From Octopus bimaculoides (taxonomy: Eukaryota): DNA of 46,400 nucleotides. Made by a program: the position numbers and the translations under genes. Below are positions 842 to 45,158 of the stretch, piece after piece. Below the pieces are notes generated by a model, which worked only from the letters and a program-made list of their open reading frames with translations, ran no database searches and was not told where the DNA came from. The first letter of the stretch is position 1, and the number at the start of each line of letters is the position of its first letter. The stretch lies in assembly GCF_001194135.2 (NCBI RefSeq), contig NC_068985.1, forward strand, positions 8,747,238 to 8,793,637. The letters run 5' to 3'.

Positions 842-1068
842 TAATCGTTGGATGGAATTTATAAACATTTAATTCATCGCTACGCGCGTTTCCACAAATC
901 ACATATCTCTTAATATCCCATACCGTATTCCCGGGCTGATTGCAGTGTAGTCCGTAGTATCCGTGGGTATCCGGTAGATCATCTTCGTGGATCCATTTCT
1001 TCAGGCGATATAACATTAATGGATACACAGAGGGTGGTTTATCCTAAGTGATCAATGCGAAGGTTGAT
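842..1068 (-). mobile_element. Unclassified ~230 bp dispersed element carrying a hammerhead-like motif (copy 1)
   Basis: The reverse complement aligns co-linearly with 33951-34221 (TCAACC..CCATTAA.GTTA.ATCGCCT.AAGAAATG..GAAGATGAT..GGATAC..ACTACACTG.AATCA..AAGAGA..GTGATT..GGAAACGCGCGTAGCGATG.ATTAAATGTTT..TCCATCCAA.GATT). Confidence 0.8.
876..1009 (-). ncRNA. Type I hammerhead-ribozyme-like motif with a 105-nt insert in place of stem II
   Basis: Minus strand reads AUCGC-CUGAAGA-(105 nt)-GAAACGCGCGUA^GCGAU: perfect 5-bp stem I, canonical CUGANGA and GAAA, palindromic ACGCGCGU stem III, GUA cleavage triplet. No clear canonical stem II. Confidence 0.6.
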
Positions 1069-1095
1069 CCCAACCACGATAACAACCAACGAGGC

Positions 1096-7739: not shown

Positions 7740-8826
7740 TTACAAATATTTGCTGAGTTGAAGATTAGATACTACCCCATATTTATTTAAAATTTCAAGT
7801 CTCCTACCTAAACGGTGATTAAAGGTTTTAACCAATTTACCATATCTATACCCTTGTTTTACCAAATGTCTTAGCAGCTTATTTATTCTTTCCAATATTT
7901 ATTAGCATCATTAATAATAGTACTATATCTGATAATTTGCCTTGCAAAAACACCATAACCTATAAAAAAAGGAATTCTACTATTTAACAATGGCACTGAA
8001 GCCACTTGGAAACCAAAATCTTCTGTTTTATTATGAATGTCAGTCCATATTTCATTATTATCGTTAATTATTAAATTGACATCTAAATAATTAATATTTC
8101 TTATATTGTTACCATTTCTCGTGGCTATAATCTCACTAGGGTATATATTTCTAAGTGAAAATTCAGATAAACGATAATTAGGTATAAATATATCATCCAT
8201 GCATCTGCAGCATCCATTAAATTGTTTAAGTAAACCAATCTGTTTCCTCGCACATAGGTCCTTAGGAAGAAAGATAATGGTCCGCCAACAGAAGGCTATA
8301 ATTTCCACTCATTGGAATTCCCCCAACCTGCTCAAACACCCTACGCGCAAACATTACAAACGAATTATTAATAATAAAACTAACCAATTGTTTCATCTTT
8401 TTTTTTTTATTATATTGGTATATCCCTTTTAACAACAAGTAAACAAGAAACCTTTACCATTCTTTAAAGATATACATTTATATCCTTTATTAAAATTAAT
8501 ATCTAATATTCTAAAAATACCGTCCACACGTTTAAGATTTAAGTTTGTATATAGTCTCGAAAATCAAACACATACATAATCTTAACTTTCTCAGTCTATC
8601 CAGGAATTCTTTAGCTGATCTAATACTCCAAAAATAATTAATTCCTGAACTGTTATAAATTTTATCACAATATTTTTTTAAAGTATGTTCTAACAGCTTT
8701 TAAAGCATCATTAACCAATATAGATAGCCGTTTATTTGTACAATTACTACTTCTTGCTAGGAATCTACTTTAAAAGGAACTTTATGTAATTTAGGAATCC
8801 CAAAAAGTTTAAGAATATTTTTATCC
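7740..8826 (-). mobile_element. Decayed Penelope-like retroelement reverse transcriptase (Naiad/Chlamys-type motifs), frameshifted
   Basis: Minus-strand motifs in correct order across frames: GIPKLHKVPFK; SSNCTNKRLS..KYCDKIYNSSGINYFWSI..EFL; VFDF.TLYT; FIINNSFVMF..VFEQVGGIPMSGN; CMDDIF; YLD; HNKTEDFGFQVASVPLLNSRIP..YGVFARQIIRY; LVKQGY..LVKTF..KY; stop at 7740-7742. Confidence 0.85.
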
Positions 8827-10912: not shown

Positions 10913-10973
10913 CGAGAATTGATAAACTGAATTTAATCTTACGACTTTGAATCTCTAGAAGTAAGAATGAATT

Positions 10974-11279
10974 GAAGTAAGAATTGAAATTCTCTCAAAT
11001 TCCACTGAATTCTTAGAAAAAGCCAAACGCTTTTGGAAACGGATACAGGTGGTCTAAGAATCTTTGATTCCCAACCAACATGAAGTAAGAATTGAAATTC
11101 TTTCAAATTTCACTGAATTCCTAGAAAAAAGCCAAAGGCTTTAGGAGACGGATACAGGTCGTCCGAGAATCTTGGGCGCCCAACCAACATGAAGCATGAA
11201 TTAAACTTTTCTCAAATTCCGCTGAATTTCTAGAAAACGCCAAAGGCTTTAGGAGACGGATACAGGTGTTCCGAGAATC
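10974..11279 (+). repeat. 108-bp-unit minisatellite, ~2.8 copies
   Basis: Units start at 10974, 11082 and 11191 (GAAG.A.GAATT.AA..TT.TCAAATT.C.CTGAATT..TAGAAAA.GCCAAA.GCTTT.GGA.ACGGATACAGGT..TC..AGAATC..CCCAACCAACAT). Confidence 0.95.
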
Positions 11280-14802: not shown

Positions 14803-14925
14803 CCACCAAGGTGGATTCCTAATATGCTAGAAAAAGACACTAAATCGTCTTACCATAAAGAACAAATTCTTCGGGTAAGACGATTTAGCACCTTCTTCTA
14901 GCATATTAGGAATCCACTTTGGTGG
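14803..14925. repeat. Long palindrome, 52-bp arms, 19-nt loop
   Basis: 14803-14854 versus reverse complement of 14874-14925: 5 mismatches in 52. The loop holds a further AAGAA/TTCTT pair. Confidence 0.95.
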
Positions 14926-15165: not shown

Positions 15166-16620
15166 TTATTTTTATATAGTGCTTTCACTGCACTACCGAG
15201 CGCAGCTCTGAGTGCCTTCGGTAAATGCTGTGGTTGGTTTTTGAGCTGTTGTTTTCACTGTATTGAAAGTGCTTTACGCAGTACGTGCGCGGTGCTATTT
15301 TCCGTATGTTATATACATTCACAAGTCCTGCTGTTTTGGTTATGTAGTTGTCTGAAAGTTTTTTAATCATACCTAATCATCTATTATCATAGGGAGTGTT
15401 TCTGATTTTAGGCTCCACATTCAAGTTGCTTCTATTTCCAGGTCTTTATATTTTGAGAGTTTCTCCGTTTGTTTTAGCGATAAATTTTCATCTGTTTGCA
15501 TTGATACATCGATTAGAAGGCATTTTTTTGTGGTGATCTTTGACAACTATATCGGGTCAATTAACCTTGATCTCCCTATCTGTATGTATTGGTATATCTC
15601 AGAGTATGGTTGCTTTGCTATTTTTTGAGATCTTTTTAAGAGTGTATTTATACCATCTTTTTTCCGTTCCCATTTCATAGCTTCCTGTGTATATAGGTAA
15701 AAAAATCTGTCATGTCTGTGGATATATTCCTTCTCCGCCAAGACTGAGCAGCCAGAGAGAATATAATTTATTGTTTCTTTTCCATCACTACATATTCTGG
15801 AGTTACTTGAATTTTTCTTCATTATGTGTTTCCGATGATTTCTGGTGAGGAAGCTTTGATCTTGTGTTGTAATTAAAAATCCTTCAGTCTCTACTTTGAG
15901 TCCTGAGCTTCTTCAGGCATTGTTGGGATTTTACTTTGTCTATTTATTTTCTGTTTAGCTCATACCAATATTTACCATGTAATAGCTTTTCATCCCACCG
16001 TTTTATCATGATATTGTTTATTTAGTTTATTTTACTGCTGTTTTTTTTTTGTTTCCTCTTTTTCTTCATAGTTGTCAGGTACTCTAACTTGTATTTTATA
16101 CTATGACTTGTTTCTTGTATTTTTCAGCTTCATTAAACACAGAAAACAGTATTTTTTCTTTTGTTCGTGTCTTGTGACTATTTATATCAGCTTTCTTTGC
16201 TTCTGAATTAGGTATTTTTGTAGTCCTATGGTGGTTATTTTGTAATAGTTTTCTAGTTGTATAAGACCTCTACCACCTTCCATGCGTTGTATATATATAA
16301 CCTTTCTATGTCAGAATTTCGTTGGTGCATCCTAAATTCTGTAATTATTTTTCTTCTTTCCCCGTCTATTTTGTTAAGTTCATTTAGGATCCAGTTAAGA
16401 TTATTGCAGCTGTAACTTATAACTGGGACGGCTAGAGTTTTTATACCTATTATCGTGTTCTTTTGCACTCACCTCTGTTTTAAGTATTAATCTAACTCAT
16501 CTATAGTATTCCTTTCTCATCTTCTCTTTAATTTGTGTGTGTAGTATTGTATTTAGTTCATTGATTCTTAAGTGTTTGCATGTCTGGCTTTCGTCTAATT
16601 CTCTGATTTCATTTGTTTTA
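15166..16620 (-). mobile_element. 5'-truncated, decayed R4/Dong-like (RLE) non-LTR retrotransposon, local family 1
   Basis: Minus strand: KEKMRKEYYR.VRLILKTE; KTLAVPVISYS..WILNELNKID..RKII..SDIERLY; zinc-knuckle region ETINYILSGCSVLAEKEYIHRHD; GMIKK..AHVLRKALSIQ* (stop 15255-15257); then 3' UTR. Confidence 0.9.
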
Positions 16621-17395: not shown

Positions 17396-17959
17396 ACGTA
17401 ATTTCATTCTGTAATATTTTGATTAGTTCCAGAGATAATTCTGTTTGTTATTTTCAGAAGAAATCTCTTCACAACTAATTAGTTGTAACAGGTTCAGTTA
17501 CATGAACTGAACCATTACGAAAGAAAAGAATATAACACACAGTAATTCCTAAAATCTTCCAAGTATTCAATAATTTACTCTGTAAGTGTGAGAACAATAT
17601 ATGTGCGCATATGTCTGTGTGCGCGCACATGTGCGTGGGCGTATGTCTCTGTGTGCGGGCGTGCATACATAAGTCGATACACATGCATTACACATATGCA
17701 CATAATCTCTCGAAGTTTCGAAATTCTTCTATACATATATATATAAATATAATATACAGACTGTTCTCGTTAATAAGGACGAAATTCTAAAATGAATGCA
17801 GAAAAAATTGTGGTATTTGCTTCCTATTATGGTAACGTATGTTTTATATTACACAAAACCTGTGTTGGAATCCCAAACCAAGGGTAGTCTTCAAATGTGT
17901 TTTTATCTAATGACATTCAATCCAATAGTCTGCATGCTATCAGTTGTAGCTTTATTTAC

Positions 17960-18660
17960 TTCGCTTTCCACTGCAATCTCTAGGTGCAACCGCATGTGTT
18001 TGTTATGTTTCTGTGGAAGACATCACGCATGTCATTAGCAGCTGTGCTCAAATGTCGTCACGGTGCTACCTCCCTATACGATACGATGTTGTCGCTAAAA
18101 CAATTTACATTGCCATCCGCAAAAAAGACTGTCCTGGAATAAATTTAGAAAATACCTCTGTTATGGAATACATATATAAACACCAACTCAAAGAATACTA
18201 GTGGAATATTATGATCAAAACGTCTGTCAAATGTAAGCTTAGCAGGCCGGATATTGTTGTTTGGGACAGAAAGGGCAAATGTACGTACCGTCATACAGGT
18301 CAGCTGCCCTACAGGTATAAATATCTCTTTGAAAATCAAAGAAAAAGAGGATATCTATGGACAACGGCTTCGAAACTTCCAGCTTCTATATCCAGACTAT
18401 GAATTCATATTCATATCAATAATAATTGGAGCATTAGGTTTTGTTAGTAAATGATTTTCAGAAAGAGAAACTGTCCGGCTGATTCGTACATTACAAATCG
18501 ATTCTGTGGGTGGAACAGTAAAAATATGCAAGACTTTTCTCAAGTTTCAAATGTGAATTTGTCTGAGTTGACTGCATCCCAAAGATAGAACCTTGCATTT
18601 TGTTGGAAACCGGCGCCCTCTTCAGTGGAAGACTTATAATAATTAAAAATAGAAGAGACT
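17960..18660 (+). mobile_element. 3' part of an RLE non-LTR retrotransposon, local family 2
   Basis: C..C..EDITHVISSC..MSSRCYLPIRYDVVAK; RPDIVVWDR; VSCP..NISLKIKEKEDIY; IIIGALGFVSK; GTVKICKTFLKFQM*; 3' UTR shared with 38114-38366. Confidence 0.9.
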
Positions 18661-23599: not shown

Positions 23600-24030
23600 T
23601 GTATCTGTAGCACCGTCCTAAATCTAAGAAAAATATTTCAGTATGAGTAACCTCTGAGTTTTGTAGAAAGTTACTATTTACCGGTGCTTGAAGAATTTTC
23701 TGGATCTTAGGTGTATTGATGTAGTATTAAAGACGTACTTTCTCCAGGAGAGATTTCATTGATGGTGAGGCTTTGCGGCTTTAGTGAATTTGAAGTTTTG
23801 AGTTATGCGCAATGAGAACGATAAGAGTTTCCTCATGTACATTGATTACATCTTTGTGATATTGAATTAGAAATCGTTGGCATGATTCTAAGAACGCATG
23901 CACTTTTTTACCTAAGCAGTCATGCCTGTGTTTATGCACTTTTTGTGCTACAATAAAGCACTCCTGCAATACGTGATTGATACTTTCGTCTCCTTTCCTT
24001 GCGGATTTAACATTTGCTATCTGAGTGAGC
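23600..24030 (-). mobile_element. Decayed RLE (R4/Dong-like) LINE C-terminal fragment
   Basis: GDESINHVLQECFIVAQKVHKHRHDCLGKKVH matches the zinc-knuckle/RHD motif; downstream part is degenerate. Confidence 0.6.
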
Positions 24031-24078
24031 TTTGACGATCTGTGCATTTATCAGGTTTGCTCTTGAACGGCTATAGCA

Positions 24079-31325: not shown

Positions 31326-31408
31326 AAAGATAGAAGCTACATTGTAAAGATAGAAGCTACATTGTAAAGATAGAAGCTACATTGTAAAGATAGAAGCTAC
31401 ATTGTAAA
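31326..31408 (+). repeat. Perfect 20-bp tandem repeat x4 (AAAGATAGAAGCTACATTGT)
   Basis: Four identical units at 31326, 31346, 31366 and 31386. Confidence 0.98.
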
Positions 31409-31659
31409 TCATTTGGTCCATTGATTAGAAAATAAGAATATTTTCTCAATATTGGTTCGTGGGAAGAAATTGTGTTCAAAATATTGATTTGTTTTCAATG
31501 TTTTGCTTTAGAGGAGAAAGTTTATAAATTCTCCCATTAGAGATTTTCTCAATTTTTATCGCATTAGCAACGGCAATTGCAACAAAATCTGAAAAATAAT
31601 CACGGTGTCAGAACAACAACAGGAATAACAACAACAACAACAATAATAATAATAATAAT

Positions 31660-31872
31660 TTTTTTCTACAAAAGGTTCGAGGCTTGAAATTTTGGGGAAG
31701 GGGCTAGACGATTACGTCGACCCCAGTACACAACTTTTGCTTATTTAATCGACCCCGAAAGGATGGAAGGCAAAGTCGACCTCGGTGGAATTTGAACCCA
31801 GATCGTAAAGACGGACGAAATAGTGTTAAGCATTTTGCCCGGCGTGCTAACGATTCTGCTAGCTCACTGTCT
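31660..31872 (-). mobile_element. SINE family C (stack copy a)
   Basis: Reverse complement: GAGCTAGCAGAATCGTTAGCACGCCGGGC (box A region), GGGTTCAAATTCC (box B), GAGGTCGACTTTGCCTTCCATCC. Confidence 0.9.
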
Positions 31873-31884
31873 TAATAATAATAA

Positions 31885-32091
31885 TGGTTTCAAATTTTGC
31901 CACAAATTTTGGGGGTAGGGATGAATCGATGGCATCAACCCCACTTCTCATCTGGTACTTATTTCATCGACCCCGAAAGGATGAAAGGCAAAGTCTACCT
32001 CGGCGGAATTTGAACTCAGAATGGAGCGACGGACGAAATACCGCTAAGCATTTCGTCCAGCCTGCTAAAGATTCTGCCTGTTCGATGCCTT
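31885..32091 (-). mobile_element. SINE family C (stack copy b)
   Basis: Same head and core, different 3' end. Confidence 0.88.
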
Positions 32092-32106
32092 AACAACAAT
32101 AATAAT

Positions 32107-32308
32107 ATTTTCTACTATAGGCAGAACGCCTGGAATTTGAAGGGAGGGGGACAGTTGACCACATGGATCCCAGTACTTGACTGGTACTTATTTTATCAGC
32201 CCTGAAAAGATGAAAGACAAAACCGACACCCGCTAAATTTGAATTCAGAACAAGTTTGAACTAAGCATTTCGTCCGACGTGCTAATGATTCTGTTAGCTC
32301 ACCGTCTT
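32107..32308 (-). mobile_element. SINE family C (stack copy c)
   Basis: Same head and core, with an internal deletion. Confidence 0.85.
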
Positions 32309-32345
32309 GAATAATAATAGTAATAATAACAATAATAATAATAAT

Positions 32346-32469
32346 CTTTTCTACTCTGGGCACAAGGCACAACATTTTGGGAGAGGGGGCCAGTCGATTA
32401 GATCAACCCCAGTACGCAACTGGTACTTAATTTATCGACCCCGAAAGGATGAAAGGCAAAGTCGACCTC
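32346..32469 (-). mobile_element. SINE family C (stack copy d, headless)
   Basis: 3' part only; stops at GTCGACCTC, followed by (AAT)n. Confidence 0.88.
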
Positions 32470-32499
32470 AATAATAATAATAATGTTTGGCCTCTACAG

Positions 32500-33379: not shown

Positions 33380-33611
33380 GTTTATAAGTTATTTAAAGAC
33401 ACAAAAAAAACAGTGAGATTCACTTCAACATTTAAATTTATTATGCCAAAATATTTTCGTCTCTTTCAGACCGCGACCTGTTCACTGACAAAATTCCGTG
33501 CTGCATCAGTGAAAAGGTCACTGTCTCAAAGGGACAAAAATGTTTTGGCAAATTAAATTTAAATGTTGAAGTGAATCTAACGGTTTGTGTGTTTTAAAAT
33601 GGTTTATAAAC
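33380..33611. repeat. Long imperfect palindrome (~107-bp arms, 17-nt loop), MITE-like or fold-back element
   Basis: 33380-33488 versus reverse complement of 33506-33611 (GTTTATAA..AGATTCACTTCAACATTTAAATTTA..TGCCAAAA.ATTTT.GTC.CTTT.AGAC.G.GACCT.TTCACTGA). The left end abuts a gap. Confidence 0.92.

Positions 33612-33845: not shown

Positions 33846-34221
<376 letters not shown>

Positions 34222-34290
<69 letters not shown>
34222..34290. repeat. (ATT)n microsatellite
   Basis: Directly visible. Confidence 0.97.
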
Positions 34291-34291
<1 letters not shown>

Positions 34292-34303
34292 GTTTTATTA
34301 TCA

Positions 34304-34513
34304 AAAGCGACGAGCTGGCAGAAACGTCAGCATGCCGCGCGAAATGCCTAGCGGTATATCGTTTGTCTTAACGTTCTAAGTTCAAATTCCGCCGAGATCA
34401 ATTTTACCTTTCATCCTTTCGGGGTCGATCGGGTTGCGAACTGGGGTCGATCTAATGGAATGGTCCCCTCCCGCAAAATTTTAGACCTGGTACTTAGAGC
34501 AGAAAAGATTATT
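34304..34513 (+). mobile_element. SINE family C
   Basis: GCGACGAGCTGGCAGAAACG head, AAGTTCAAATTCC box B, CCTTTCATCCTTTCGGGGTCGAT core, AGAAAAGATTATT tail. Confidence 0.85.
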
Positions 34514-34682
34514 AGTAATATCATATATACACATACATATACACACAAACGTTAATAGGAATAGCAGAAAGTACAAAAAAAGTTCAGAAAATTTCAAATG
34601 GTTCAAAGGTCGTGGTGTATTGGAACGATTTCTAATCAACGGAAGAGTCCAGTGTAATCGATTGGTATGTAGGAGAGTTGCA

Positions 34683-35879: not shown

Positions 35880-35994
35880 CATGTATATATATATAGAGAG
35901 AGAGAGATACATACACGCATGCACGCACACACACGCACACACACACACACACACGCGCAAACACACACACACAGACACACATGCACACACAATG

Positions 35995-36036
<42 letters not shown>

Positions 36037-36058
36037 TACATACAAACATATATATATA

Positions 36059-36100
<42 letters not shown>

Positions 36101-38384: not shown

Positions 38385-40025
38385 ATATGGATGTGAAAAG
38401 ATGGAAAACTGTATACCAGACGGGCAACACCTCTATCAATGACTTTTCTGATTCTCCTATATTTGATGAGGAATGTTACAGGTATCTAGTGGTGGATGAA
38501 AATATATCTTGCAATGGCACCTGAATAAAACACGTGTCATTAAAGAATATTACAGTCGAATACAGAAACTTTGGACCTCAGAACTCTCTGCATTCAGTAA
38601 AACAGTGGCCCGCAATGTGTTTGTAATGCCAGTACTCATAGCAAAATTTGGGCTACTTGATTGGACGCTTGATGGGAACCGAGGCATTGATGTGAAAACC
38701 CAGAAGCACACATAATTTCCACATAAACAATGACGTAGGCCGTCTCTACCTAAAACGAAAACAAGGCAACAGAAGCTTAATATCGATCCAAAATGACTTT
38801 GAATGTCGAATCATATCCCCTTAGCGACATCTTTTAACCAGCAAGTGTCAAAATGCATCCCTTGACCAAATTTGCATACATGAGACTGATAACATCATAA
38901 GACTTGGAAAGCAGCTCCTTGAGCAACATTCCTTGTCTGATAACCTTAAATACATGACCAAAGAAGTCACACAACTCTACTGCAACGTATCATCAGATGA
39001 CCGGATGAGCCTTATATGAGTAGAAGAACATTCATTGATATGTTAATAGAAACCTCCGAGGTGATAGTAAAATTGATCATCAAAGCAGTCTATCATGGAC
39101 CAACAACCGGATTACTACCTCCCGCTCTGTAGGGTATGCATTTGCAATCCAGGAAGAGGAAATATCAATCAGACCCTTGATGCACAAATGGGAGAGGGAT
39201 GCAGGAAAAAGCAGTAAAATGTGACAACCGATGCAGATTTTGTGGGGTTAACACCGAAGATATCACCCACATCATAAACAGGGGTCCGAAGATCTCATCA
39301 CAGTATTATCTACCGATGAGGGGTAATGCTGTGGCAAGGACACTGTATAACGAGGTCTGTCAGAAGGATAACGCTGAGGACAAAGAAATAAGAAACCTCA
39401 GTATGATGGAAGTCATAGCCACTCATAATAATAAAAAGGAATATTGCTGGAATGTTCCAGTGAAAACCTCAGTAAAGTATAAACACAATAGGTCTGACAT
39501 TATTATTTGGGATAGATAAGAGAAACTGTGTAACGTTGTGGCAACCGGCTGCCCGGCGGATGTTAACATAATGCTGAAGATTAGTGTAAACGAGAACACC
39601 TATGCTCAACTACTGAGGAGTTTACAGCTACTCTCTCCAGATTACAAGTTCCGGTTTATACCTGTAATAATTGGAGCACTGGGATATTTAACACACTGCC
39701 TAAATACCTTGAGAAATTAGGCTTCTCAAAACCAGAAAGGAGAAAGCTGATTCGAAAACTACAGATCCAAGCTATCACTGGAACTAGAAATCTGTAAAAC
39801 ATTTCAGAAGTTTATTATTTAAGTATATACGAGCATGTCTAGATATGCGAGTATATGCATGAAAATACATACATAAAACAAAACATACAAATCTACACGA
39901 ATACATACATACATTTATACTAAATTAGCCTGTTGATGTTGAAATTCCACTGAAGGAACCTTGGCGCTAGGTTAGAAACCGGCTCTTTCTTTATTAGCAA
40001 GAAATCCTAAAATAAAATTGAATAA
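38385..40025 (+). mobile_element. 5'-truncated RLE non-LTR retrotransposon related to family 2
   Basis: CYRYL.VDENI..NKTRVIKEYYSRIQKLWTSELS..FVMPVL..FGLLDWT; CDNRCRFCGVNTEDITHII..YYLPMR; HNRSDIIIWDR; GCPADVNI; PVIIGALG; EKLGFSK..KLIRKLQIQAITGT; then 3' UTR. Confidence 0.92.
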
Positions 40026-40831: not shown

Positions 40832-40880
<49 letters not shown>

Positions 40881-40910
40881 GAAACGCACCTACATACATA
40901 CATACATACA

Positions 40911-40944
<34 letters not shown>

Positions 40945-40960
40945 CATACATAAATACATA
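40832..40960. repeat. (CA)n plus (TACA)n microsatellites
   Basis: Directly visible. Confidence 0.95.
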
Positions 40961-41152
40961 CATACAAGCACGAGCTCGTAATATATATATATAGTATATA
41001 TTAATAAGCAATCAGGAAAGCGAAAACATGAATCTCCGAAGTTTTGAATAAATTGAATACATATAAACATACATACATACATTTACACACACACATATAT
41101 ACATACATACTTGCATATCTACGCGCACAAAAATGCATATAGGCTAGGGCTT

Positions 41153-41203
41153 GGCTGCCTGCATTGACAAGGGGCAACACCCTGAAACTAGTCTGCAGAT
41201 GCC
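41153..41203 (+). ncRNA. Decayed minimal type I hammerhead-like motif with GUC cleavage triplet
   Basis: CUGCA-UUGACAA-GGGG(CAACA)CCCU-GAAACUAGUC^UGCAG. Perfect 5-bp stem I extended by GGC/GCC, palindromic ACUAGU stem III; the core deviates from CUGANGA at two positions. Confidence 0.65.
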
Positions 41204-41439
41204 AAACCAGCAGGGGGACACTGCTGACCTCCCCTGTTTGAAGGTTATAAAGGACACAGGTTTCGTGTGTCACATAGCTAGCTAGAGGCGATGGCTTCAT
41301 GGAGCTAATTCACGGCAGCTTTCGTCCTAATTTTGGGACTGCCATNNNNNNNNNNTATATATATATATATATATACATGCTTGAATATATGTGTATGCAT
41401 ATATGAATACATATATACATTTATAACTGTGTATATATA

Positions 41440-41477
<38 letters not shown>

Positions 41478-42283
41478 TGTGCCTATGTATGTATGTAGGC
41501 ATGTATGTATATATGTACGTATGTTAGTATGTACGTACGTACATATGCTTGCAAGCGGAAAGAGTCGAAGACATTTGATTTGTAATGGAAGAATGATTGA
41601 GAAAAACTTGTTACACATTTCATAAATTCTACCCATGAGACAAACAGAACTAAATGTTATTTATTATTTCATGTCGCATTGTGTTTTCTTCAGAACATCA
41701 ACCATGTTTTACTTAACTGTCAAAAGAGGAGCTCTAAAGTGGATTAGATTGAATGTTGAGCTTTGATATGGAAACTAAGAAGTGCCTGTTAAGCCATGCT
41801 GCACGCAATCATAATTTATCTACTAAATGTTCATTGAACATAAAAAGAAACATAAAAATATTTCTATTCAATTAATTTGAATTATACTCTTTTGCTACTC
41901 ACGGTAAATGGAATTCTGTTCCAAGATTTTAGACGTTACATAACGTCTTGAAAATCACACGGGAATTCAAACCCACTAAGCTATAATTTTATAGAATAAT
42001 AAATACAAAATGTGTCACGGATCAAAGTAGTTTTTTTGCATTTTCTTTTATGGGATATTGATCGCCAGAACAGTAATGGGTCAAGTGAAAAGGCGTTGGT
42101 TCACATTCAGTTACCGACTTTGTAACATCTATAACCAAAATACTAATAAATCACTTCATACCGCTAAGATTTAAACAACGGTACTATGACTCGATGTGTG
42201 CTTACCTCAACTTCATTTTGTGTATATAGCTTCAAGCGCAATGATCTCTCCAAAAGTAGTTTATATGTTTATATATAAATATT

Positions 42284-42499
42284 CTTTTCTACTTTAGGTA
42301 CAAAGCCAGAATTTTTTTAGTGGTGGGGGCAGTCGATCAGATCGACCCCAGTGCGCAACTAATACTTAATTTGTCGACTCCGAAAGGATGAAAGGCAAAG
42401 TCGACCTCAGTGGAATTTGAACTCAGAACGTAAAGACAGACGAAATATCGCTAAGCATTTCGCCCGGCGTGCTAATGTTTCTGCTAGCTCGCCGCTTTG
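42284..42499 (-). mobile_element. SINE family C, full length, with 17-bp target-site duplication
   Basis: GTTTATATATAAATATT at 42267-42283 and 42500-42516; intact head and core. Confidence 0.93.
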
Positions 42500-42529
42500 G
42501 TTTATATATAAATATTATATGTAGATCTC

Positions 42530-42747
42530 AGGCGTCGATCTGGTAGAGCCGTTAACACACCGGGCAAAAGGCTTACCAGCATTTCGTCCATCTTTACAGT
42601 CTGAGTTCAAACTCCCCCATGGTCGATTTTGCCTTTCATCCTTCGAGGACGATAGAATAAATACCAGTTGAGCACGGGAGTCAATCTAATCGATTTAGCT
42701 CCTCCCCGCAAAATGTTTTGTCTTGTACCAAAATTTGGAACTAATAC
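42530..42747 (+). mobile_element. SINE family C, full length, older copy
   Basis: Head AGGCGTCGATCTGGTAGAGCCGTTA.., GAGTTCAAACTCC; probable TSD TATATGTAGA at 42516-42525 and 42748-42757. Confidence 0.85.
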
Positions 42748-45158
42748 TATATGTAGACTAAATCTCCAGTAATATATCTCCTGCTATAGAGCAATGACGT
42801 TTAGAAACCGTCATATTATACTGATTTATCATATTATAAGTATATCTTATAAACAGATGCTTTCATTGTGGCAGACAACATTGCATGATGATACAAGAGA
42901 TCATTTCAAAATGCTTTCTCAAATCGAAATGAGTGTAAGATTACTGTTGACTTGTATTTTACAAACGTAAGGCATCGAAGTTATCGTGTTTCTTCATCAG
43001 AGCTGTTTTTCATTTGGTGTTTCTTTACTAATGCAGAAGCCATGTTAGCATTTATAGAGGCATTAGGTTGGTATTTGTTGTTCTCAAACGATTATTGTCT
43101 TATATTAGCATTACAAATAGTAATTTCTTTTTATTCTTGCTACTGATGCTGACAAAAACCATGAAACCTGAAGATGCAGGAAAAGTTTCCATTTTATCAT
43201 TAATTCGACATAATTCTTACACGCAAAAATTGATCAACCTGAAAGTGATGGATGCGTTTCCATTTTTTAAAAACAATAGAGTTAATTTTCAAGGATACAA
43301 AACAAAGACTTTAGAGAAGATATGTCACCTTATTTGATTAGTTCTGCTTTTAGATTTTCGGAGGTGTTGAATTTGTTTTCTGTTGGGCTTTACAGGTATA
43401 TGTGATATCATTTACATGTATATATTCTTTATAGAAGATATATCTTGTGGGTTTTCTGTTTAAGCAGGTTCACGTGTGTTTAGGACTGATTTCCTTGGAG
43501 TGTTTATTATATATAGCAAGCTTGTATTTTCATTAAAGAAAACCGCTGTGCAGCATCAACGATTATGAGTGTGATAAGAAGCTTCAAGATTTGTCATACA
43601 ACATTGCAAAAAGCGAAGTTTGGATACTCATTTTGAGTTAAAACCTTGGCGTTCAGGATATGTTTTCTGTTGCGCCAAGGGCATACGTATTTCTACTATG
43701 CTCTGTCGTACCAAGAAGACATATCTATCGCTCCTTCTCCACTGACTTCGAAAGAATAAAATCAATAAAATCAATCCTTCGAGGCATAAAGATTACTAAT
43801 AATGGAGTCTATTTTCTGTTTCATAAATCCAAGTCTCGGCCTTAGAATTAAACTAATTTGTTAATTAGCTAGAAGGGAAGACGCAGTACTCTTGACATTT
43901 GCAGGTAATTATTGATCTTTGATATCGATTCAGTTTGATGTTCAGCTTTAACATCCACATACGACACCTTCCGTAATAATTAGACACAGAAAGACACTCT
44001 ACAGATAGGTTTATATCAGGAGGAGACGTAACATGAAGCAAAGAAATTAAGAGATTAATGTTGGTTCTAAGGTCAAGTATTTAATAAAGGATCACAACAG
44101 TGATGAAATGATAATAGGAGACCGGGGTGTCGGGTTGAACTAGGCTTAGAATTTATGCTGGAGCCTTATTTCGAAGAAGAGACACGCTGCAGAAGAGGAA
44201 AATAATACAGTAAGAATGATGCCTAAATATAGAATTGATTCATGGATGTTGGTGTTGAATAGACTTTTTTCCAAATTTATGACCAGTGCCCGTCGGCGCC
44301 TAAACCTGCAACACTACCCATGCCTGCTTAGTAAGGAAGATGAGTTTTGTCGGTTGACTTGCAAGAGGGAAAAACAACGGTCAAAGAACTAAAAAAAAAA
44401 AGCAATAGTCAACGGTCAAACAACAGCAGGCCGTGAGAAATTCCTAATCTTTACTTAGACATCTCTCTAGAAGAAGGAAATTGCCATATGAATCTTATGA
44501 CTGGCATTGGATATACACTCCTAAAGAGGCACAAACTGTTAGCTTCTGAGCATTTTTGAATCTTGTGATTCATGCATTCACCTGATGAAACCGTTTTCCT
44601 AATGATGTAATGCCTCCCCAAAATTTCGGGCCTTGTGCCAAGAGTAGAAAAGAATAATTCTCGTAAACGCAAATAATATTTAGTGAATTTTCAGATGATC
44701 CTCAGTCTATTTGCTTGGCGTTCTAGAAATATCTTAACCGACACACTTCCGACCTTAAAAACAAGGGAAGGATATTGAATAAGCTCGTCTAACATAAACT
44801 TCGTCTGAAATGAGTAGACGGTTTCGACTGGAATTCTTTTGATCGTAAATCTACTCAGTCAGATCTGAACAAAACAACAACAACAACAAGATAATCAATT
44901 GTGTTATATATTATCTACTCACTAATTAATCGCCATAGACAAGTAACCAAGCATTATCTACTTAAGTGAAGGAAATATATTGGTTTCTGCTTCAGTAAGT
45001 TGTGTGAAGATTTAGATCATCCGCAGAAGGAATTACTTTTCAAATACTGTTTCAGCTCTCTGCATCAGTTACTTGTATCTCATTCGGCAACACCTTTACA
45101 TTTGTGCCAACTAGGCTGCTAGTAGTCAACGAAATGGCCTGCATATGATGTTGATTGT

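Follow-up and report, generated by a model that had tools for sequence, protein, structure and literature searches.

Two loci in a 46,400-nt stretch of the Octopus bimaculoides genome (hereafter the window, meaning the whole of the DNA analysed) carry copies of a short dispersed element. What they contain is not a proven new ribozyme but probably a decayed relative of known retroelements that carry ribozymes. The reading that we favour, with a probability of about 0.5, is that a hammerhead-derived motif sits in a short non-autonomous element that is related to Penelope-like elements (PLEs) or retrozymes and is now decaying. We lean towards a hammerhead origin because the strict hammerhead skeleton, a helix that closes the insert in register with the core, a conserved CpG-containing palindrome and the PLE/retrozyme architecture all fit it.

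BLASTN and nhmmer searches of the window recovered two copies of the element only, and a pattern search allowing three mismatches likewise found no others. The two copies are 80% identical across 163 nt by BLASTN, and copy 1 scores E=5e-75 with nhmmer, in agreement with the sequence-only reading that both loci are copies of one dispersed unit, here about 225 nt. The units are 229 nt (copy 1) and 269 nt (copy 2) long, with GC contents of 0.42 and 0.41. Their parts are as follows.

842-1070, minus strand: copy 1 of the ~225-nt dispersed element, with a complete hammerhead core
1009-1005, minus strand: copy 1, helix I 5′ arm AUCGC
1004-998, minus strand: copy 1, core box CUGAAGA (C3-A9)
997-893, minus strand: copy 1, spacer at the helix II position, exactly 105 nt
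892-889, minus strand: copy 1, GAAA
889-882, minus strand: copy 1, helix III ACGCGCGU
881, minus strand: copy 1, A17, with the predicted cut between 881 and 880
880-876, minus strand: copy 1, helix I 3′ arm GCGAU
33953-34221, plus strand: copy 2 of the element, with core G5 changed to A
34014-34018, plus strand: copy 2, helix I 5′ arm AUCGC
34019-34025, plus strand: copy 2, core CUAAAGA (G5 to A)
34026-34130, plus strand: copy 2, spacer, 105 nt
34131-34134, plus strand: copy 2, GAAA
34134-34141, plus strand: copy 2, helix III ACGCGCGU
34142, plus strand: copy 2, A17
34143-34147, plus strand: copy 2, helix I 3′ arm GCGAU
34136-34209, plus strand: direct duplication of 45 nt inside copy 2, GCGCGTAGCGATGC[A/C]TTAAATG at 34136 and again at 34181

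Both window copies read AUCGC-CU(G/A)AAGA-105 nt-GAAA-CGCGCG-UA-GCGAU, and all that had been said of their letters at first reading holds, including the many substitutions (28 of 105 positions) and zero indels that separate the two inserts. Helix I (AUCGC/GCGAU) has five Watson-Crick pairs in both copies. In copy 1 its 5′ arm has ensemble pair probabilities of 0.6-0.9 within a 134-nt segment, and U1010 could contribute an extra U-G pair. Copy 1 allows the proposed extension of this stem, CAUUAAU/AUUAAAUG, at a cofold energy of -9.6 kcal/mol, but the extension is absent from the minimum-energy structure of copy 2. Helix III, correctly described as a self-complementary octamer present in both window copies, consists of an A-U and a C-G pair with a GCGC loop and is invariant in the three copies now available (see below); an 8-bp intermolecular duplex of two such octamers is feasible at -17.5 kcal/mol. 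The duplication in copy 2 starts at the GCGCG of the palindrome, so that the predicted cut site and the 3′ arm of helix I are doubled and GAAA is not.

A third copy of the element lies outside the window. A full HMMER search of 1.84 billion representative proteins with the single open frame of copy 1 gave one match, a 51-residue protein (E=4.5e-7) that is the translation of a third element copy on 2.16-kb Logan contigs of 36% GC. These contigs, L011 and L012, come from runs SRR11869390 and SRR11869391 and are identical. Since nothing but a further copy turned up at protein level, the element is no fragment of known coding sequence. We also rejected a coding origin of the element itself: copy 1 has one open frame, but the substitutions show no codon-position bias by our own count.

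L011 reads AUCGU-CUGAAAA (G8 to A)-102 nt-GAAA-CGCGCG-UA-GUAUU. Its spacer is 73-76% identical to that of each window copy, the same distance as separates the window copies from each other. With 102 nt in L011, spacer length is not fixed in the family, and the idea of an insert held at 105 nt has to be given up. Helix I of L011 is broken, with two G-U pairs and two mismatches; GAAA-CGCGCG-UA is intact. MAFFT alignment places an 11-nt insertion, TATTTTTGTTC, in L011 (1683-1695), one nucleotide past the predicted cut site, and homology resumes beyond it.

Other searches yielded no further relatives. A 27-mer pattern scan of viral and metagenome contigs gave no match. Shorter patterns, a 19-mer in metagenome contigs and a 17-mer in viral contigs, gave 10 matches, nine of them at 54-70% GC and one at 45%, which we attribute to chance because the contigs are unrelated and have no CUGANGA upstream. 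Word-indexed protein searches with an RT-like fragment (7886-8308), the element ORF and a LINE zinc-knuckle ORF returned nothing, exact look-ups found none of the window ORFs on record, and literature searches with the motif strings and SINE strings found nothing.

The invariant hammerhead core in type I order (C3-A9, G12-A14, A15.1/U16.1, H17 not G) is complete in copy 1 and in the majority consensus of the three copies. The two core changes, G5A in copy 2 and G8A in L011, each occur in a single copy, leaving CUGAAGA as the majority consensus, in which CUGANGA is retained. The majority sequence, taken as ancestral, thus has every invariant hammerhead nucleotide in the type I order. An alternative placement of the core nearer GAAA (UUAAGAG...) has no helix II and a mismatched core and was rejected by inspection. 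The element falls outside the canonical hammerheads on two counts, the 10.1-11.1 pair and the Rfam models. The Rfam hammerhead models had no match on the window at gathering score, and at E up to 10 neither a hammerhead nor any other credible family was found on copy 1, copy 2 or L011.

At the helix II position, each of the three copies has an A following A9 and an extra G preceding G12 as the bases that adjoin the core, and the canonical G10.1-C11.1 pair is therefore absent. The sequence-only reading, which saw no canonical stem II pairing, was right about this pair but overlooked a helix of 7-8 bp that closes the insert in two of the three copies. In copy 1 and L011 a single nucleotide separates the closing helix from the core at either end of the insert.

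996-990 and 900-894, minus strand: copy 1, candidate helix II, AUGGAUC/GAUUUGU, 7 bp including three G-U pairs

The copy 1 helix is flanked by the unpaired A997 and G893. Its counterpart in L011, AUUAAUCA/UGAUUGGU, has 8 bp with two G-U pairs, and four of the seven pairs remain in copy 2. Between copy 1 and L011, one pair is altered on both sides (G-U to U-G) and one on one side only. When the spacers were shuffled, with offsets of up to 2 allowed, a terminal helix this long arose in 0.6% of shuffles for copy 1 (at least 7 bp) and in 0.4% for L011; the two P values (0.006 and 0.004) are not independent because the copies are homologous. Across the alignment 88% of cells pair in the hammerhead structure, which was itself derived from one of the sequences, compared with 13-48% when the partners are slid. 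Covariation among the three sequences is not significant (329 of 500 shuffles do as well), and no compensatory change is seen in helix I. We found no description of a helix II domain of such size in the literature searched.

The 5′ and 3′ ends of the element are common to all three copies. The unit is thus a linear element of about 225 nt, and its copies are not permuted versions of a circle. There are no tandem arrays: the window copies and L011 are all single, and the only repeat is the 45-nt duplication within copy 2. Earlier described as a retrozyme/pLTR-like unit of ~230-270 nt, the element is indeed a dispersed unit of that size, but its copies are solitary, and ORF listing and Pfam found no Penelope-like reading frame (RT + GIY-YIG) in the window.

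The window is about 64% A+T, contains assembly gaps and is crowded with microsatellites (50 TRF rows), and arrays flank both copies.

765-831, plus-strand motif (TG)n: directly 3′ of copy 1, (CA)n on the element strand
1096-1217, plus-strand motif (CA)n: 5′ of copy 1, (TG)n on the element strand
33846-33951: (ATG)n(ATA)n array immediately 5′ of copy 2
34222-34301: (ATT)n array immediately 3′ of copy 2, inverted complement of the (AAT)n on its 5′ side; a SINE-like repeat head comes next

Each window copy therefore sits between inverted arrays of one motif, which on the element strand read (TG)n/copy 1/(CA)n and (AAT)n/copy 2/(ATT)n. A spacer of ~25-30 nt (1071-1095) separates copy 1 from its array on the 5′ side only; the best local match of this spacer to an inverted 3′ end of the element lies at the 3′ terminus, but its score is not significant (P=0.15) and the match was discarded. 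Judging roughly by how dense the arrays are, chance is very unlikely to have placed all four ends within 30 nt of one. L011 is not flanked by microsatellites. Inverted microsatellite pairs also occur elsewhere in the window, as a compound microsatellite with inverted symmetry, (CA)n(TA)n(TG)n, at 35922-36100 and as (AC)n(TACA)n ... (TG)n(TATG)n enclosing ~470 bp of unrelated sequence at 40832-41541. No element-related sequence was found in other such pairs (for example, 40832-41541), and inverted pairs may be a general feature of the genome.

Several SINE-like and LINE-like repeat fragments share the window with the element. A SINE-like family of tRNA-derived type (…ttcaaattccgccgagatc…ttcatcctttcggggtcgat…) with (ATT)n-type ends is present at 34303-34524 and also at 31623-32470 and 42267-42758. 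We take the sequence at 34303-34524 to resemble the tRNA-derived SINEs of octopus; ARAGORN calls no tRNA gene in this family, and no tRNA genes were found in the window as a whole. Decayed LINE-type C-terminal fragments with a CxxC...H...C zinc knuckle lie at 39181-39516 (+), 17950-18198 (+), 15550-15912 (-) and 23784-24047 (-), and 39199-39516 has a weak Pfam zf-RVT match (E=0.07). At 7886-8308 (-) a 141-residue open frame shows, by eye, RT-like motifs (CMDDIF, YLDV) reminiscent of Penelope-like elements; Pfam gave it no match at E up to 0.1, and the protein search no homologue. Other repeats comprise a 109-bp tandem repeat of 2.8 copies with 86% matches (10973-11279), a perfect 20-bp tandem repeat of 4.2 copies (31326-31408) and self-reverse-complement stretches at 33380-33611 (77%), 14803-14925 (84%) and 42267-42758 (71% identity), which could be foldback/MITE-like units or head-to-head repeat pairs.

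Could the hammerhead likeness be a coincidence? The element might be an ordinary SINE-like repeat or LINE 3′ tail that generates or targets microsatellites, in which the boxes, the 5-bp complement and the CG palindrome were amplified from a chance consensus. We consider this unlikely, but a serious contender. A loose descriptor (5 bp or more in helix I, G-U pairs included, a spacer of 4-200 nt, 2 bp or more in helix III and no helix II required) matches the window once, at copy 1, against a mean of 0.17 (order 1) to 0.38 (order 3) in Markov-simulated windows, and 15-30% of windows contain such a skeleton by chance; the bare skeleton is therefore not significant. The lack of an Rfam match and of a canonical helix II, the want of thermodynamic or covariation support and the inactivating core changes in two of the three copies (G5A and G8A) all agree with coincidence, as does the CUGANGA box, which with five of seven positions invariant is no better conserved than the spacer (63% of columns invariant; leader 45%). 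The element also has defined ends like those of a SINE, and nearby SINE-like repeats in the window likewise adjoin (ATT)n arrays.

Several observations nevertheless speak against coincidence. The strict descriptor asks for a helix I of five Watson-Crick pairs and for self-complementarity in helix III, as published for metazoan hammerheads; it had no match at order 1 and three at order 3 in 40 Mb of simulated sequence, or at most 0.0035 per window, a generous figure because the descriptor was fixed after the data had been seen. The closing helix of 7-8 bp is in register with the core (P about 0.005), and the palindromic 2-bp helix III with its tetraloop is the exact architecture of metazoan retroelement hammerheads (PMC4209133, PMC7229834). 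The GGAAACGCGCGUAG block is invariant in the three copies, including its three CpGs, against a background of CpG decay in which only 1 of ~9-15 other CpG sites is kept in all three; our own Fisher calculation for this contrast gives P about 0.005-0.02. Nor does the element have a recognizable SINE head: no tRNA was found and no 5S or 7SL-like match, and a SINE origin of its 5′ end was set aside. In the two window copies the core and helix I differ at 1 of 29 positions compared with 28 of 105 in the spacer (Fisher P=0.005); across all three copies the departures from the majority (2/57 in the core, 35/303 in the spacer) show a trend only (P=0.09).

The pattern of conservation could instead point to some other signal in the block GUGAUU.G.GGAAACGCGCGUAG, to which the hammerhead would be incidental; the palindromic ACGCGCGT, for example, might bind a protein, act as a promoter element or form a 3′ recognition hairpin for the reverse transcriptase that mobilizes the element. 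All 12 positions of GAAA+CGCGCGUA and the whole 14-nt run GGAAACGCGCGTAG are invariant with the three CpGs kept, while the 5′ core box has changed twice and helix I of L011 is broken. The distance of the block from the 3′ end varies with the copy over ~40-90 nt, a region in which retroelement recognition signals usually lie, and copy 2 duplicates the segment from GCGCG onward. However, the two halves of the motif do not differ significantly in conservation (2/21 versus 0/42 departures), and a signal of this kind leaves unexplained both the perfect upstream CUGANGA, preceded by the exact complement of the five nucleotides after the UA site, and the closing helix in register with it. We regard this explanation as very unlikely.

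The folding results bear on whether the motif could be a working ribozyme. For copy 1, adopting the hammerhead fold costs 10.9 kcal/mol relative to the minimum-energy fold, and the ensemble probability of helix II is about zero; in L011 that probability is about 0.27-0.29 and constraining the fold costs no more than 0.5 kcal/mol. The full element of copy 1 folds no better than its shuffles (z=+0.77), and RNAalifold returned a weak and different consensus, recovering neither the hammerhead nor a conserved distal structure. That the element represents a novel hammerhead class fully active today, with a functional ~90-nt helix II domain and efficient self-cleavage of copy 1 as found, is highly improbable: the intact core, helix I and helix III of copy 1 and its 7-bp helix II candidate speak for it, but the better competing fold, the A/G at 10.1/11.1, the distal domain without conserved structure, the decay of the other copies and the poor cleavage of PLE-type minimal hammerheads even as dimers (PMC4209133) speak against it.

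A hammerhead-derived motif in a decaying PLE- or retrozyme-related element, the reading that we prefer, finds its closest parallels in the minimal type I hammerheads of PLEs. These have a helix I of 4-5 bp, a helix II of 6-8 bp, an extra base between nucleotides 9 and 10.1 and a palindrome formed by 15.2-16.2 and loop 3 (PMC4209133). The octopus element shares with them the type I order, the short helix I, an unpaired extra base after A9, a long helix II and a very short palindromic helix III that implies dimeric action, as well as a distribution as scattered single copies in invertebrate genomes. PLEs insert into microsatellites, adopt inverted arrangements and have tails of 30-40 bp at one end (PMC8557442), and the octopus element may share this habit: both window copies lie between inverted arrays of one motif and copy 1 has its ~25-30 nt spacer, while L011 lacks such flanks. 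It differs from PLE hammerheads in having A/G instead of G10.1-C11.1 plus the extra G before G12, in a helix II capped by ~86-89 nt and not by a small loop, and in that neither a PLE frame nor a second flanking repeat was found in the window, nor any Rfam match.

The animal non-LTR retrozymes (PMC7229834; Li et al. 2026 preprint) offer a second comparison. The unit size falls within their range of 170-400 nt and its GC content of 41-42% is below their limit of 45%. In invertebrate retrozymes, too, a type I hammerhead has a 2-bp helix III with a palindromic tetraloop. Animal retrozymes appear to be derived from the flanking repeats of PLEs, and dispersed monomers of them are common (bioRxiv 10.64898/2026.07.22.740005). 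The typical animal retrozyme is nevertheless a head-to-tail tandem array of 150-450 bp units, each with a hammerhead, that is cut into circles, whereas the octopus units are single, have shared ends and carry a hammerhead interrupted by ~100 nt.

Two other systems parallel the unusual features of the motif, its long insert and its non-canonical helix II. Martick and colleagues are said to have described in 2008 a discontinuous hammerhead in the 3′ UTR of rodent Clec2 genes, with a long stretch in the helix I loop and with cleavage reportedly shown. There, as would be required here, the core halves are separated by long unrelated RNA and can still assemble; the insert of Clec2 is in the loop of helix I, whereas that of the octopus element is in helix II. 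Among natural type I hammerheads of viruses, cores with little or no canonical helix II still cut slowly in vitro, and infected hosts contain the cleaved RNAs (bioRxiv 10.1101/2024.05.16.594327). The viral motifs differ from the octopus element in their long stable helix III, the absence of a large insert and their location in viral 5′ UTRs.

Taken with these parallels, the three copies suggest the following history. Both window loci would be single copies, old and in decay, of a non-autonomous interspersed element that is short (~225 nt), low in GC and bounded by defined ends. The ancestral sequence would have contained a type I hammerhead like those of PLEs and animal retrozymes, with a 5-bp helix I, the full CUGANGA / GAAA / UH core and an extra A after A9. 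Its helix III of 2 bp with a palindromic GCGC loop would have been stable in an active form only when two RNAs paired through the 8-bp ACGCGCGU duplex, and its helix II of 7-8 weak pairs would have carried a distal domain of ~86-89 nt in place of a small loop. Descent from a PLE or retrozyme hammerhead is what the shared architecture suggests, and the flanking arrays are consistent with mobilization by a PLE-type enzyme that favours microsatellites. Any self-cleavage in the source copies would have been slow and dimer-dependent at best. Where the motif was intact it may have occurred; it would have been lost in copy 2 through G5A and in L011 through G8A and the broken helix I.

A more specific version of this history holds that the motif is a type I hammerhead with a weak helix II of 7-8 bp, a variable domain of ~90 nt and A/G in place of G10.1-C11.1, which cleaves as a dimer via ACGCGCGU and processes the RNA of an undescribed family of Penelope-dependent, microsatellite-landing short elements in cephalopods. 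With all these parts taken together, we judge it decidedly unlikely.

Since animal retroelements already supply hammerheads in huge numbers, a further family would not in itself be news, and the element would be no more than an ordinary repeat in decay if its motif proved to be a relic or a coincidence. It is possible, though, that the element carries a variant hammerhead. If that motif is real and active, the hammerhead core tolerates a helix II domain of ~90 nt and non-canonical bases at 10.1/11.1, and current descriptors and Rfam models would miss split motifs of this kind, such that genome censuses undercount them. The octopus would then harbour a cephalopod family of short, microsatellite-associated repeats linked to Penelope-type mobilization.
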